A stretch of 64,000 bases of DNA from the sequence record OZ196212.1, one strand, 5' to 3'. Below the pieces are notes generated by a model. The model saw only the letters and a list, made by a program, of their open reading frames with translations, ran no database searches and had not been told where the DNA came from. Positions 36,568 through 40,374 of this stretch are shown in pieces. Position 1 is the first letter of the stretch. Each line of letters opens with the position of its first letter. The translations under genes and the position numbers were made by a program.

Positions 36568-36621
36568 TCTTAGTGGTATTAGTGAATTTAGTAGTATTAG
36601 AGATATTAGGAGTATTATATG
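36568..36621 (+). repeat. degenerate 9-bp tandem repeat (TATTAG core) overlapping RBS
   Basis: tcttagtgg tattagtga atttagtag tattagaga tattaggag tattatatg; preceded by hairpin 36546-36566. Confidence 0.7.
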
Positions 36622-37308
36622 AATCGTAAACTTGCACTGGTAGCAGCATTTGCAGCATTTGCAATGACTGGCTGTAATGATGTTACACTCGCAACAACAA
36701 CAAACGATAAAATTGTTGCAGTGCGTGATGTTTTAAATCACGAAGAATCTGTTATGATTAATCGCTGGCTTCAATTAGCAAGTGGCGATTCGTACTTGTA
36801 CGATGACATGTGGGCTGCGCTTGCAACTCGTAACAAGTATGGCGGTACGTCAAATAAACGCGCAGACTCAGAACTACCATTCTGTGATGTGATCGAGGGT
36901 GTCGTAAAGAGTGAAAAACGTATTCGTGATTCATTCAAAGGCACGTTGTCTAATCAGTGGAAGACGAAATACGGTTTGACTCTTGCTCAACAGTGCGATT
37001 ACACGCCACCACTGACGAAGAAAGAAAAAATGGCGTTGCTTGAAGAGCGAGAAATCGATCTTAAACTTGAAGACGCATCACCAAAGCCAACGACGATGAA
37101 CGAAGTCGTTGATTCGGTTAACACGTTGCTTGATCCGCATGAGTATGACTATCTGATTGAGTCTGCGCGTGAGTGTAAACGTGCTAAGGTGAAGTTGTTG
37201 AGTCTGACTAACGTAGGTCAACCATTGACGATACAAGACGGTGACGACGCTCGTAAGCTAATCATCGAATGTAAAATGCACAAACTAGAAGTGGAATTGA
37301 ACAAATGA
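36619..37308 (+). CDS. lipoprotein, paralog A
   Basis: Signal II with lipobox AMTG-C; similar to 51942..52661 including LEVELNK end. Confidence 0.85.
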   Translation: MNRKLALVAAFAAFAMTGCNDVTLATTTNDKIVAVRDVLNHEESVMINRWLQLASGDSYLYDDMWAALATRNKYGGTSNKRADSELPFCDVIEGVVKSEKRIRDSFKGTLSNQWKTKYGLTLAQQCDYTPPLTKKEKMALLEEREIDLKLEDASPKPTTMNEVVDSVNTLLDPHEYDYLIESARECKRAKVKLLSLTNVGQPLTIQDGDDARKLIIECKMHKLEVELNK

Positions 37309-38093: not shown

Positions 38094-38134
38094 AGCCCTC
38101 CTAAATATGTCATATAATCATATGCAGGAGGGCT
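38094..38134 (+). promoter_or_regulatory. late promoter inside an SD-sequestering hairpin
   Basis: agccctcct 38094-38102 pairs with aggagggct 38126-38134 (contains AGGAGG); CTAAATA at 38101-38107; inner atatg/catat. Confidence 0.75.
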
Positions 38135-38138
38135 ACGC

Positions 38139-38672
38139 ATGCCAATGCAAACATCGGGAGCTATTTCCCTTAACGATATCAAAACATACTTTGGCGGTGA
38201 TACGTCTGTCCCGATGAACTCATATTATCGAGGTGGCGCGTACATCCCCGACATTACAGAAAATGCAGCAATACCTACGTCTGGACAAATCAGTATAAAC
38301 AACTTCTACGGCGCTATGCGTCTAACTGCGGTTGATACTACTCGTGATACGAGTAGAAGTACTAATAGCACACGAACAACCTCGTATACATCTAGTTGGA
38401 CTACATCGTGGACTTCTACATGGCAAACATCGCGAGGGACAAGCCGAAGTACTGGTTATACAACGACGTGGTCGACAAGTACAGGGTGTGGTAAGGGTGT
38501 ATGTGGATCTCAGAACACGAGTCGAAGCACTTCAAGATCGACAGGTTACACAACATACTGGAACACGAGTCGAGGGACTTCGCGAGGGACTTCGCGAGGG
38601 ACAAGCCGAAGTACAGCATATTCATATACTACTACATGGTCGACAACATTCTCGACTCAAAAACCGGAATAA
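38139..38672 (+). CDS. putative virion fibre-tip protein: adhesin-like N-domain plus Thr/Ser-rich beta-hairpin
   Basis: SGAISL.DI...GG...SYYRGG...IPTSGQISI.NFYG N-domain; 4-residue T/S-R/W/Y repeats around CGKGVC. Confidence 0.8.
   Translation: MPMQTSGAISLNDIKTYFGGDTSVPMNSYYRGGAYIPDITENAAIPTSGQISINNFYGAMRLTAVDTTRDTSRSTNSTRTTSYTSSWTTSWTSTWQTSRGTSRSTGYTTTWSTSTGCGKGVCGSQNTSRSTSRSTGYTTYWNTSRGTSRGTSRGTSRSTAYSYTTTWSTTFSTQKPE
38430..38615 (+). repeat. 12-bp tandem repeats and a 23-bp duplication inside the T/S-rich gene
   Basis: cgagggacttcg x2 at 38571-38594; tcgcgagggacaagccgaagtac at 38430-38452 and 38592-38614. Confidence 0.9.
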
Positions 38673-38674
38673 TC

Positions 38675-38884
38675 ATGACAGACAGTGAGAAAAACGAGCT
38701 ACAACGGCTCAACAATGAAGTGAATCGTTTGAATGAAGTTTGTGCTAACTTACAAGAAAGTCAAACGATCATCCTTGAAACTATAATTGACCACATCGCG
38801 TCGCTAGATGCAGACCGCGATACATTATTGCGTAGTTACGACGATGCGATTCAACGTATCATCGATAAGCACAGTGGTGAATAA
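38675..38884 (+). CDS. small coiled-coil protein
   Basis: Start moved to ATG 38675; 69 aa heptad-like. Confidence 0.75.
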   Translation: MTDSEKNELQRLNNEVNRLNEVCANLQESQTIILETIIDHIASLDADRDTLLRSYDDAIQRIIDKHSGE

Positions 38885-39733
38885 ATGTTACATGAAATTC
38901 GTGAAGAGACTCAGGGGTTTAATAATGCGTGTCGTATAGGCACGCTTGTTCTCAGTGATCATAAGCCGTACGATTCGTGCTTCGAAGCACTTGAAATATT
39001 ACGCTCAAATGGATATCCGTGTAACTTCGATATCAATCATGACAATGGCGGCGGGTTTAGTACGAATGAATGGGGGTCTCAGTTAAGAGCATTTTCCGTT
39101 CGCTATATGAAATCCTCTGTTCATACAAAAGCACTTGTTCAGTCATTCTATGACAATGAGCATGATCATGTAATCGAGCTGCCGAAACGCGGGGACAAAT
39201 ACAAGCTAAAATCACTTGCTCCTTGTTTCAAGCAATACAATCGAATCGTGTTCATTGGTGGTACTAATCTGATTCATTCACATATGGATTTAGACAAGAT
39301 TGATGTCATTCTTGACATGGATTCTAGTGTCGTGATAAAGCCACACCCACTTACAAATGTACAAGACATGAAAATGTTGACCGAGCGTTATGGTAAAGGT
39401 CGCGTTCTGTACAACAAATTGAATGGGATCGAATTGCTGCAACAGTGTGAGCGTGCATGGATCCCCGTCTCGTCTGAAATGTGGTTCACTTGTGCCTTTT
39501 TAGGTATCCCGTACGACACGATCACGAAGTCTGACTACGAGATTGGTGGCACGTACTACGCGATGTTAGAAGCAATGAAGATCATTCAACGTGACACTAA
39601 GTTGCCGATGAACGTCATCGCGTCGCGAATCATCACATCACCAACGTCTGGTATATACACGTCGATGTATGCATTCAAACAAAACTATCCCAACTTCATT
39701 GCGAATGTTCAATCACATGGTGGGCGCGTATGA
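38885..39733 (+). CDS. KpsS/KpsC-like HP-motif glycosyltransferase-like protein
   Basis: VVIKPHP motif followed by SSEM....FLGIP, typical of the CMP-sugar transferase C-domain. Confidence 0.55.
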   Translation: MLHEIREETQGFNNACRIGTLVLSDHKPYDSCFEALEILRSNGYPCNFDINHDNGGGFSTNEWGSQLRAFSVRYMKSSVHTKALVQSFYDNEHDHVIELPKRGDKYKLKSLAPCFKQYNRIVFIGGTNLIHSHMDLDKIDVILDMDSSVVIKPHPLTNVQDMKMLTERYGKGRVLYNKLNGIELLQQCERAWIPVSSEMWFTCAFLGIPYDTITKSDYEIGGTYYAMLEAMKIIQRDTKLPMNVIASRIITSPTSGIYTSMYAFKQNYPNFIANVQSHGGRV

Positions 39734-40374
39734 TCAATTTAGACATCCATACTTTAATTTCAAGTGAGGCGCAAGTCGATTCACTTATAATGTTCAGCAC
39801 GTCGTTTCGATTGCATCACGCAGATAATGCAGGGGTCATTAAATGCGTCGTTCTCCCGCCAATCGATATAGAATCATTACCGTCAATTGATGGCGTGGAT
39901 TATGTTCGAACATTCACATCCAAATACGTATTCTTGTCAGTCGATAACTTTTTCATCAATAAGATCTATGCTGTGTATAGCGCACATCGAGACCGAAACT
40001 CAATTCGTAGCTATTTCAATGATGATGAATCGACAGACTTCATGATCGTTAATGATAACGATGGCGAAGATGTTGAGAATATTCATATGAATATCAATTT
40101 CAGTTTTGACAGTCATGGGGATCGAAATGATTACTATAAACGACTGGTTCAAATGAAAGACGTGGTAAGCATCAACACTAAGAAATTCAAGCTGACCGAC
40201 CGAACGCAAATAAACAGTTTGTACACTTTACTGTTCCCATGGGAGACTTACTTCGACTCGATGCGACGAGCAACTGGTCTAAGTGAAGAGTTTATCAGTG
40301 ATGTGATGTTCAATTGTCAACGATTTTCACATGGCATTGTATATCGCCATAGTGGTTTATTAAATGTGAGTTAA
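39730..40374 (+). CDS. hypothetical protein
   Basis: 214 aa in operon; no family recognised. Confidence 0.8.
   Translation: MINLDIHTLISSEAQVDSLIMFSTSFRLHHADNAGVIKCVVLPPIDIESLPSIDGVDYVRTFTSKYVFLSVDNFFINKIYAVYSAHRDRNSIRSYFNDDESTDFMIVNDNDGEDVENIHMNINFSFDSHGDRNDYYKRLVQMKDVVSINTKKFKLTDRTQINSLYTLLFPWETYFDSMRRATGLSEEFISDVMFNCQRFSHGIVYRHSGLLNVS

Follow-up and report, generated by a model that had tools for sequence, protein, structure and literature searches.

Cross-strand aromatic or cation-aromatic pairs that do without a hydrophobic core are known from tryptophan zippers, from designed cation-π β-hairpins, and from the single-layer β-sheet of OspA; phage fibres are usually trimeric. A ladder of Trp and Arg side chains is described for the thrombospondin type-1 repeats (TSRs) and for the WSXWS cytokine receptors (PMC2173040, PMC6954052). 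The gp38 adhesins of the T2/T6/S16-like Straboviridae (PF05268) are small proteins, encoded after the distal fibre gene and consisting of an N-terminal attachment part and a variable head (PMC12032242). The protein considered here is encoded by a 177-amino acid open reading frame (ORF) in a 64,000-nucleotide stretch of sequence record OZ196212.1. This stretch, called the window and used for the numbering of all positions unless a contig is named, shows 100% identity to Vibrio phage D527 and to phages closely related to it, a group of KVP40-like Straboviridae of approximately 253 kb isolated on Vibrio crassostreae. The translation is composed of an N-terminal module and a repeat region whose two halves are complementary, a basic residue in one half meeting an aromatic residue in the other, and the gene is referred to as the fold-back gene. 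Nine Vibrio phage records carry the identical (100%) ORF. The GenBank accession of the 177-amino acid ORF is QZI87587.1.

Indexing of the translation places an aromatic residue opposite each of the 11 Arg residues found between residues 69 and 171, with i+j=240 for every pair (R69-F171, R73-W167, R79-Y161, Y83-R157, W87-R153, W91-R149, W95-R145, R99-W141, R103-Y137, Y107-R133, and W111-R129) and without a single Arg-Arg or aromatic-aromatic clash. The runner-up registers yield seven pairs (i+j=236) and six pairs (i+j=244). The pairs are spaced by four residues, and the only six-residue step is mirrored on both arms (73-79, 161-167); Y140 and Y163 are the sole unpaired aromatic residues within the arms, and R61 is partnerless because residue 179 is absent from the protein. 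The pairs, their spacing, the mirrored step, the two unpaired aromatics, and the C117-GKGV-C122 tip had all been given in the original prediction, and each was reproduced by indexing, so that the observation itself is confirmed. Arg and the aromatics set aside, 92 positions remain between residues 61 and 177, and 73 of these are occupied by Thr, Ser, or Gly; the net charge of this part is near +11 (14 Arg/Lys versus 3 Asp/Glu).

Two null models were applied to the pairing. A score as high as the observed one arose in 5 of 2000 trials when the Arg and aromatic labels were permuted over fixed occupied positions, and in 3 of 1000 when the run lengths alone were shuffled and the run structure was kept. 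The gene has direct DNA repeats common to both arms; a DNA inverted repeat was not found in 38300-38700, and the only tandem repeat in the gene is a 12-nt unit present 2.7 times (38571-38602). The symmetry consequently belongs to the protein and not to the nucleic acid. A DNA palindrome or RNA hairpin as its source was rejected for the same lack of inverted repeats, and recent slippage was rejected because there is only this one tandem repeat.

Homologs are encoded by phages 6E35.1a (93% identical overall), F86 (64%), VS2 (50%), KVP40 (49%), and D479 (46%). The order of Arg and aromatic residues varies between the homologs, and each is self-complementary in exactly one register: 11 pairs are formed in F86 (i+j=248), in which one unit has been added on both arms, nine in KVP40 (i+j=239), nine in VS2 (i+j=231), and 13 in D479 (i+j=231), in which a run of seven cations lies opposite a run of seven aromatics, with 0 clashes in any of the four. 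The metagenomic proteins P0030, P0050, and P0012 form ten pairs each, with one, one, and two clashes, respectively. Eight proteins taken together contain 83 cation-aromatic, 105 Thr-Thr, and 4 like-like pairs, and the run-length null gives p = 0.000-0.028 for each of seven proteins. The symmetry centre, located from the Arg/aromatic labels alone, sits in five phages on a conserved Lys-Gly turn (GKG, SKG, TKG, or GKS). The complementary arms of P0012 and P0050 have a globular insert of approximately 75 amino acids placed exactly between them, and there the ribbon, as judged from its sequence, would act as a stalk. When the window protein is compared with that of 6E35.1a, the differences on the face carrying the ladder are Ser/Thr swaps only, and changes on the other face are non-conservative. 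Compensatory variation between homologs, as anticipated in the original prediction, is therefore seen both in the different Arg/aromatic orders and in units inserted on both arms, complementarity being kept in a single register throughout; together with the pairing rule it is regarded as established. The Cys-closed tip, which had been part of the same proposal, is not general, the Cys pair being missing in KVP40 and VS2 and a single Cys being present in P0025 and P0026.

When the conserved neighbour gene was followed into marine T4-like contigs, a Thr-rich protein of 1,169 amino acids was reached (L103:3301-6810, JGI 3300035703 Ga0310140_0000443, a contig of 101 kb). Its residues 47-1169 obey one register (i+j=1216), free of indels across approximately 560 residue pairs, with 63 cation-aromatic pairs and 2 clashes; a label-shuffle null gave a mean of 11.8 and a maximum of 21 in 2,000 trials. 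An aromatic partner is available for 63 of the 66 basic residues, all 66 of which are odd-numbered, and Thr occupies the ±2 positions in 129 of 132 cases. The centre is again a Lys-Gly turn (YYKGIP), and the second face carries Val, Ile, Ala, and Phe. Since this protein obeys it as well, the pairing rule is not confined to one small ORF. In its gene there is no DNA palindrome to match the protein symmetry, only short, weak inverted repeats. A β-meander of many short local hairpins was considered for the giant proteins and rejected, local registers being no better than the null and the signal residing in one global register. The 46 N-terminal residues are a different module without a BLAST match, and the protein matches no PHROG family. 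This gene is preceded by fibre-like genes, of which one encodes a Peptidase_S74 domain and another matches a tail-fibre PHROG, by a Laminin_G_3 ORF, and by unassigned ORFs; downstream are a small ORF, a KpsC-like ORF, and gp13-gp15. On another contig (L055:3501-5322, IMGVR_UViG_3300027659_000183), an N-terminal module of the window type is followed by at least 547 Thr/Ser-rich residues with Lys/Arg-Phe/Tyr repeats that reach the contig end, probably the first arm of a further giant fold-back protein; a gp37-like ORF ends just before this gene.

The steps between labelled residues are mainly of four (134) or six residues (19). Thr is found at ±2 of the labelled residues in 83-86%, a mixture of Ser, Thr, Gly, and Asn at ±1 and ±3, and Arg, Lys, and the aromatic residues hold one parity. 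This β-type periodicity is established; parity and Thr at ±2 are, at the level of the primary structure, the signature of a β-strand. From the step and Thr periodicity, a conserved ladder face of cation-aromatic and Thr-Thr rows can be told from a variable other face.

The N-terminal module is far more widespread than the repeat region. In a profile search (E ≤ 1e-3), it matched 1,922 cluster representatives, in which it is fused to heads of the types GP38 (PF05268), Gly_rich_2, PKD, galactose-binding, MAM, and β-propeller; most of the module proteins from IMG/VR are Gly-rich, and the relative P0008 consists of the module and a PF05268 head (1.4e-12). In Xanthomonas and Stenotrophomonas phages, the gene immediately before the module gene is a tail-fibre gene. 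In L013, in L011, and in approximately 40 of 80 IMG/VR loci, the module gene lies just behind the end of an ORF whose C-terminus is gp37-like; this C-terminus matches phage regions annotated as distal long-tail-fibre subunit, several of the matched records carrying the annotation intramolecular chaperone, Peptidase_S74, or endosialidase-chaperone domain. By gene order, the place of the module gene behind the distal fibre gene corresponds to the gp38 position of T-even phages. The association of the module with fibre genes is thus established, and its assignment to adhesin-type proteins, made in the original prediction, is borne out by the fused heads and by this gene position. In five proteins of 151-171 amino acids (P0017, P0019-P0022), the first of the two module motifs is N-terminal and the second (IPxSGxISLxQFYGAEKP-like) lies at the extreme C-terminus, with an Ig-like/Tyr-rich domain between them, and the half-motifs may accordingly meet in space. 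The nearby radical-S-adenosylmethionine (SAM) genes had suggested a ribosomally synthesized and post-translationally modified peptide (RiPP), a reading that was dropped, as the module is common to approximately 1,900 proteins with globular heads; we presume that these radical-SAM genes rather go with the QueC-type genes.

The explanation favoured here, to which a probability of about 0.6 is given, is that of a two-part phage protein in which an adaptor module is joined to a self-paired β-ribbon and which serves as an accessory adhesin or fibre element of the virion. Residues 1-61 would constitute the conserved adaptor that anchors the ribbon. Residues 63-177 would fold back at the Lys-Gly turn (117-123), which is bracketed by Cys in this protein, to give a two-stranded antiparallel β-ribbon with approximately 54 residues per arm and a length of approximately 17-18 nm if extended. 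On one face of this ribbon, rows with Thr opposite Thr would alternate with rows in which a cation (Arg or Lys) stands opposite an aromatic residue, and since the strand that supplies the cation changes row by row, a binary "reverse-complement" code would set the register; the other face would be variable and covered with small or polar residues (Ser, Gly, Asn, Thr). Cation-π contacts in these rows are inferred from the replacement of Arg by Lys and of Trp/Tyr by Phe and from the fact that like never faces like. In relatives, the ribbon would either be a stalk whose tip bears a globular domain or form a fibre of approximately 560 residues per arm. The most likely role would be that of a late-expressed, accessory virion adhesin or fibre element, i.e., a cationic rod rich in hydroxyl and aromatic groups that is presented to the cell surface and that may stand free as a monomeric needle. 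Its charge would suit the binding of anionic surface glycans, or the rod could be a spacer, and the ribbon may be O-glycosylated by a co-inherited KpsC-like enzyme.

Late expression is plausible from the sequence upstream of the gene. A motif of the type xTAAATA is found approximately 30-38 nt before the ATG in four of five lineages. CTAAATA and ATAAATA are reported late-promoter variants of T4-like phages (PMC1524935). HTAAATA is rarer in the whole window than expected (15 occurrences versus 30.5 ± 5 in shuffled sequences), which would fit avoidance of a functional late-promoter signal. The CTAAATA of the window sits at the 3' end of the 5' arm of a predicted RNA stem that pairs the Shine-Dalgarno sequence (Table 1); as this arm ends inside the motif, the ribosome-binding site would be free in a transcript started there and in no other. 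The arrangement presumably resembles that of the T4 genes e and soc, which are translated from late transcripts only. The sequestering stem is not kept in KVP40 and VS2, where a GC-rich hairpin is found just before the motif instead.

Several observations weigh against this two-part virion protein. AlphaFold2 models were calculated from a 22-sequence alignment and from residues 60-177 as a single sequence. In the former, the module reached a predicted local distance difference test (pLDDT) of 58-81 and the repeat region one of 27-37, in the latter it was 36, and a Foldseek search of the PDB with the low-confidence model gave no match. One long hairpin had been expected in the original prediction, and a predicted structure with a disordered fold had been named there as evidence to the contrary; taken literally, the models, with no hairpin and a pLDDT of 27-40 in the repeat region, count as such evidence. 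This outcome is weighed lightly, because the alignment is shallow and the repeats, which cannot be aligned by standard tools, are misaligned in it, and a low pLDDT does not in itself speak for disorder. The symmetry is in part cheap, since units made of an Arg run and an aromatic run are near self-complementary and since the arms share a direct repeat, and three metagenomic proteins (P0025, P0026, and P0027) form only 4-6 pairs and are individually not significant. As the profile built from 22 proteins with the module hit no PDB chain at E ≤ 1, the case for docking onto a fibre tip is made from context only. The fold-back gene, which is the only module-bearing gene of the genome (one place per record), sits in an early-type region with genes for nicotinamide adenine dinucleotide (NAD) salvage, QueC, radical SAM, and ribonucleotide reductase (RNR), adjoining VP6E351A_0311 and thus approximately 55 genes from the tail-fibre genes (VP6E351A_0365-0368). 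Phages K566 and K567 are without the gene, an absence that extends over at least the next three genes downstream (the small ORF, the KpsC-like gene, and a 214-amino acid ORF). Their DNA match stops just before the gene, and in its place are a gene for a lipoprotein-like protein of 475 amino acids and several radical-SAM genes (K566: L102:7182-8609 onward), from which the element is judged to be accessory and dispensable, at a recombination-prone site. The virion proteomics of 6E35.1a identified 94 proteins (PMC12028318, Table S4), none of them from the 177-amino acid ORF; the fold-back protein could not have been detected there, as its uncalled ORF was missing from the searched proteome. Of the earlier interpretation, the antiparallel self-pairing of the halves and the adhesin-type module have held; the AlphaFold hairpin was not obtained, the Cys pair is not conserved, and the gene does not lie near the fibre genes in this phage.

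The genes downstream of the fold-back gene form a conserved cassette. Every Ser/Thr-rich fold-back gene with available downstream DNA is followed by a helical ORF of 49-69 amino acids and by a protein of 265-328 amino acids from phrog_30602/26179; the loci covered are those of six Vibrio phages, L010, L014, L011/L018-22, L029/L034, and the L103 giant. At loci with other head types, the latter protein was found in 0 of 72 cases. The small helical ORF, for which no family match was found, may resemble small fibre-assembly chaperones. A profile built from nine sequences of the larger protein matches the β-Kdo glycosyltransferase KpsC (PDB 6mgb) at E = 4e-4; the protein itself has no Pfam match even at E ≤ 10 and reaches no curated family threshold. 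L010 and L014 carry GT2 and GT8 glycosyltransferase genes beside the KpsC-like gene. The 214-amino acid ORF that follows in the window (39730-40374) and the ORFs of approximately 290 amino acids found after the KpsC-like gene elsewhere show no detectable mutual relation and no PDB match. On two other marine T4-like contigs (L099:1-3335, L101:1-3334), large fibre-like proteins precede the KpsC-like gene and end in approximately 100 amino acids with a Cys start and a His-Asn-like end, which by eye look like a Hint or auto-processing domain.

Other explanations differ in how much of this picture they would change. The i+j rule alone cannot distinguish intrachain from interchain antiparallel pairing, and the pairs may belong to an oligomer, either a trimer of fold-backs arranged as a six-stranded tube, comparable to the T4 gp37 tip needle with its chains running out and back, or antiparallel dimers or fibrils built from arm 1 of one chain and arm 2 of a different one. 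Trimers are the usual state of phage fibres, a ribbon of 2 × 560 residues is hard to imagine as a free two-stranded structure, and the hydrophobic second face of the giant protein would need burial. The short Gly-containing turns exactly at the symmetry centre and the domains inserted there in P0012 and P0050 both fit a reversal of the chain, and gp38-type adhesins are described as monomeric (PMC12032242). Oligomeric pairing is considered rather unlikely, and it changes the quaternary picture, not the fold-back itself. Less probable still is an assembly chaperone, i.e., a hairpin "tentacle" that would template a trimeric fibre tip and leave before or after assembly, comparable to the tentacles of known chaperones and to T4 gp38. 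The family does occur at the gp38 position, the C-termini of the preceding fibre proteins match regions of the intramolecular-chaperone type, a small helical ORF always follows the fold-back gene, and fibre-clasping chaperones with extended β-hairpins of up to about 88 Å have been described (PMC10579305). Against such a role, the fusion of the module to ligand-binding heads (PKD, galactose-binding, MAM, β-propeller, GP38 Gly-rich) points to adhesins, searches of Pfam, NCBIfam, and PDB revealed no similarity to Peptidase_S74 or another chaperone family, and self-complementary arms would satisfy each other and not be open for a partner strand.

That the repeat region is a disordered Ser/Thr-rich tail, in which Arg and aromatic residues are "stickers" and Ser, Thr, and Gly "spacers" and in which the symmetry stems from repeat duplication, would agree with the pLDDT below 40 throughout the region, with the direct DNA repeats of the arms, and with the label "cell wall mannoprotein" that composition alone has earned the protein. 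It is nevertheless very improbable, for duplication yields direct repeats and not reverse-complement symmetry, divergent homologs alter both arms together, the ladder face is conserved and the other face variable, and the giant protein keeps parity over 1,100 residues, with 63 of its 66 cations paired versus a null maximum of 21. An addition to the self-paired ribbon, and not an alternative to it, is that the ribbon is the O-glycosylated acceptor of the KpsC-like enzyme, so that the functional surface would be a glycan coat on a rigid rod. The enzyme gene accompanies the Ser/Thr-rich type in at least five lineages, the partnership persists in KVP40-like phages after the cassette has moved to another genome region, and the profile match lies in the HP-motif region of KpsC. 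This match is short (64 residues, including KPHP...SSE), modest, and below every curated threshold; in three of four sampled enzyme-bearing contigs, the large upstream protein is not Ser/Thr-rich; and the enzyme was not seen in virions, although it would not be expected there. The cassette and the profile match give a slender suggestion of such a modification, which on balance is held to be doubtful.

The features of the locus are compiled in Table 1.

Table 1. Features of the fold-back locus, with window coordinates
Feature	Position	Strand	Characteristics	Basis
Stem-loop (RNA) pairing Shine-Dalgarno AGGAGGGCU with AGCCCUCCU	38094..38134	+	-25.6 kcal/mol; z = -4.7	0/200 shuffles fold as well
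Late-promoter-like CTAAATA	38101..38107	+	31 nt before ATG	xTAAATA kept in F86, KVP40, VS2; flanks diverge
Whole ORF	38139..38672	+	177 aa + stop; N-terminal module and fold-back repeat region	stop-free translation
N-terminal module	38139..38321	+	residues 1-61; two SGxIS...F(Y)G copies	profile/homolog matches, 1,922 representatives, E ≤ 1e-3
Fold-back arm 1	38325..38486	+	residues 63-116; labels R R R Y W W W R R Y W	indexing
Tip	38487..38507	+	residues 117-123, C-GKGV-C-G; register centre G120 on Lys-Gly turn	indexing; turn kept across homologs
Fold-back arm 2	38508..38669	+	residues 124-177; labels R R Y W R R R R Y W F	Arg/aromatic-swapped reverse of arm 1
Small helical ORF	38675..38884	+	69 aa; always 3' of fold-back gene; counterparts of 49-61 aa in other lineages	gene order
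Candidate KpsC-like glycosyltransferase	38885..39733	+	282 aa; phrog_30602/26179; invariant KPHP + SSE	profile match, synteny

The fold-back ORF is not called in the public record of D527 nor in the VP6E351A re-annotation of 6E35.1a. Annotated in its place are short ORFs, read in a different frame or from the opposite strand, and an over-extended start of the downstream small gene, at 38107-38217, 38396-38494, and 38501-38884 of the window (OZ196212.1 162107-162217, 162396-162494, and 162501-162884). Long open frames overlap the repeat region at 38332-38688 (+), 38416-38625 (-), and 38501-38884 (+); they arise because the Thr/Ser/Arg repeats draw on a restricted set of codons, and they have misled gene callers. 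In an older record of 6E35.1a, the ORF is named "putative cell wall mannoprotein", a label which in the homologs, too, is based on composition only. A profile of the family phrog_30374, of unknown function, matches the ORF at E = 6.6e-21 (residues 1-173 versus profile positions 22-181 of 197). A Pfam search of the protein (E ≤ 1) gave no match and an NCBIfam search nothing meaningful, the score for the serine-rich family profile NF033849 being 19.5 bits versus a cut-off of 650. Upstream, at 36619-37308, lies an ORF of 229 amino acids with a lipoprotein-type signal (a hydrophobic stretch followed by Cys), whose 6E35.1a ortholog VP6E351A_0309 was found in the virion proteomics at low counts (4 and 2).

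No prior description of the architecture was found in Pfam, PDB, PHROGs, or the literature, including the fibre atlas paper. With somewhat less than an even chance, the proteins represent a previously undescribed class of fibre or stalk, in which a single chain would be folded back over 25 to approximately 560 residues per arm, with a cation-aromatic register code, Thr-Thr rows, an adaptor, and possible glycosylation. If the fold-back is real, it would be a "zipper code", natural and evolvable, by which very long two-stranded β-ribbons are built without a hydrophobic core, of interest to protein designers and structural biologists alike. It would also be a new type of shaft or stalk for phage fibres that current fibre atlases and AlphaFold do not capture, and its largest member, if fully extended, would be a single-polypeptide β-ribbon of approximately 180 nm. 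The conserved gene has been missed by gene callers, which has left its protein invisible to virion proteomics, and the linked KpsC-like gene raises the prospect of virion-protein glycosylation by some marine and Vibrio phages.

Compared with the known systems, the needle at the tip of T4 gp37 is alike in being a thin tip with the chain running out and back in antiparallel strands; it is a trimer with His-coordinated iron ions and without a cation-aromatic code or Thr periodicity. Tryptophan zippers, designed cation-π hairpins, and the OspA sheet are peptides of 12-20 residues or short sheet segments; here the motif is iterated 9-63 times in natural proteins. The chaperone tentacles are elongated, twisted β-hairpins as well, of up to approximately 9 nm, and are encoded beside fibre genes; they differ in extending from an α-helical body, in pairing with the fibre, and in lacking the Ser/Thr/Arg/aromatic periodicity (PMC10579305). 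From the gp38 adhesins, its nearest relatives in function, with which the module shares its gene position in other phages, the window protein is set apart by the lack of a Gly-rich polyglycine-II domain and of a PF05268 match and by the location of its gene away from the fibre genes; kinship of the module with gp38 was not detected by the sequence profile search of PDB chains nor by Foldseek on the low-confidence model. For the TSRs, the 177-amino acid protein has no Pfam match to TSP_1, and its two Cys contrast with a six-Cys, three-strand layout. Structurally, TSR and WSXWS domains nevertheless offer the closest parallel, the proposed likeness lying in antiparallel strands, in the stacking of Trp and Arg from neighbouring strands, and in an elongated, thin shape that has hardly any hydrophobic core. 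Heavy glycosylation is a further trait of those domains, and one that is proposed for the fold-back protein. A TSR comprises approximately 60 residues in three strands with three disulfides, Trp and Arg each being confined to their own strand. The fold-back proteins, by comparison, would use two strands of 25-560 residues in which the cation switches strand, Lys, Phe, and Tyr are employed besides Arg and Trp, and Thr-Thr rows are set in between.

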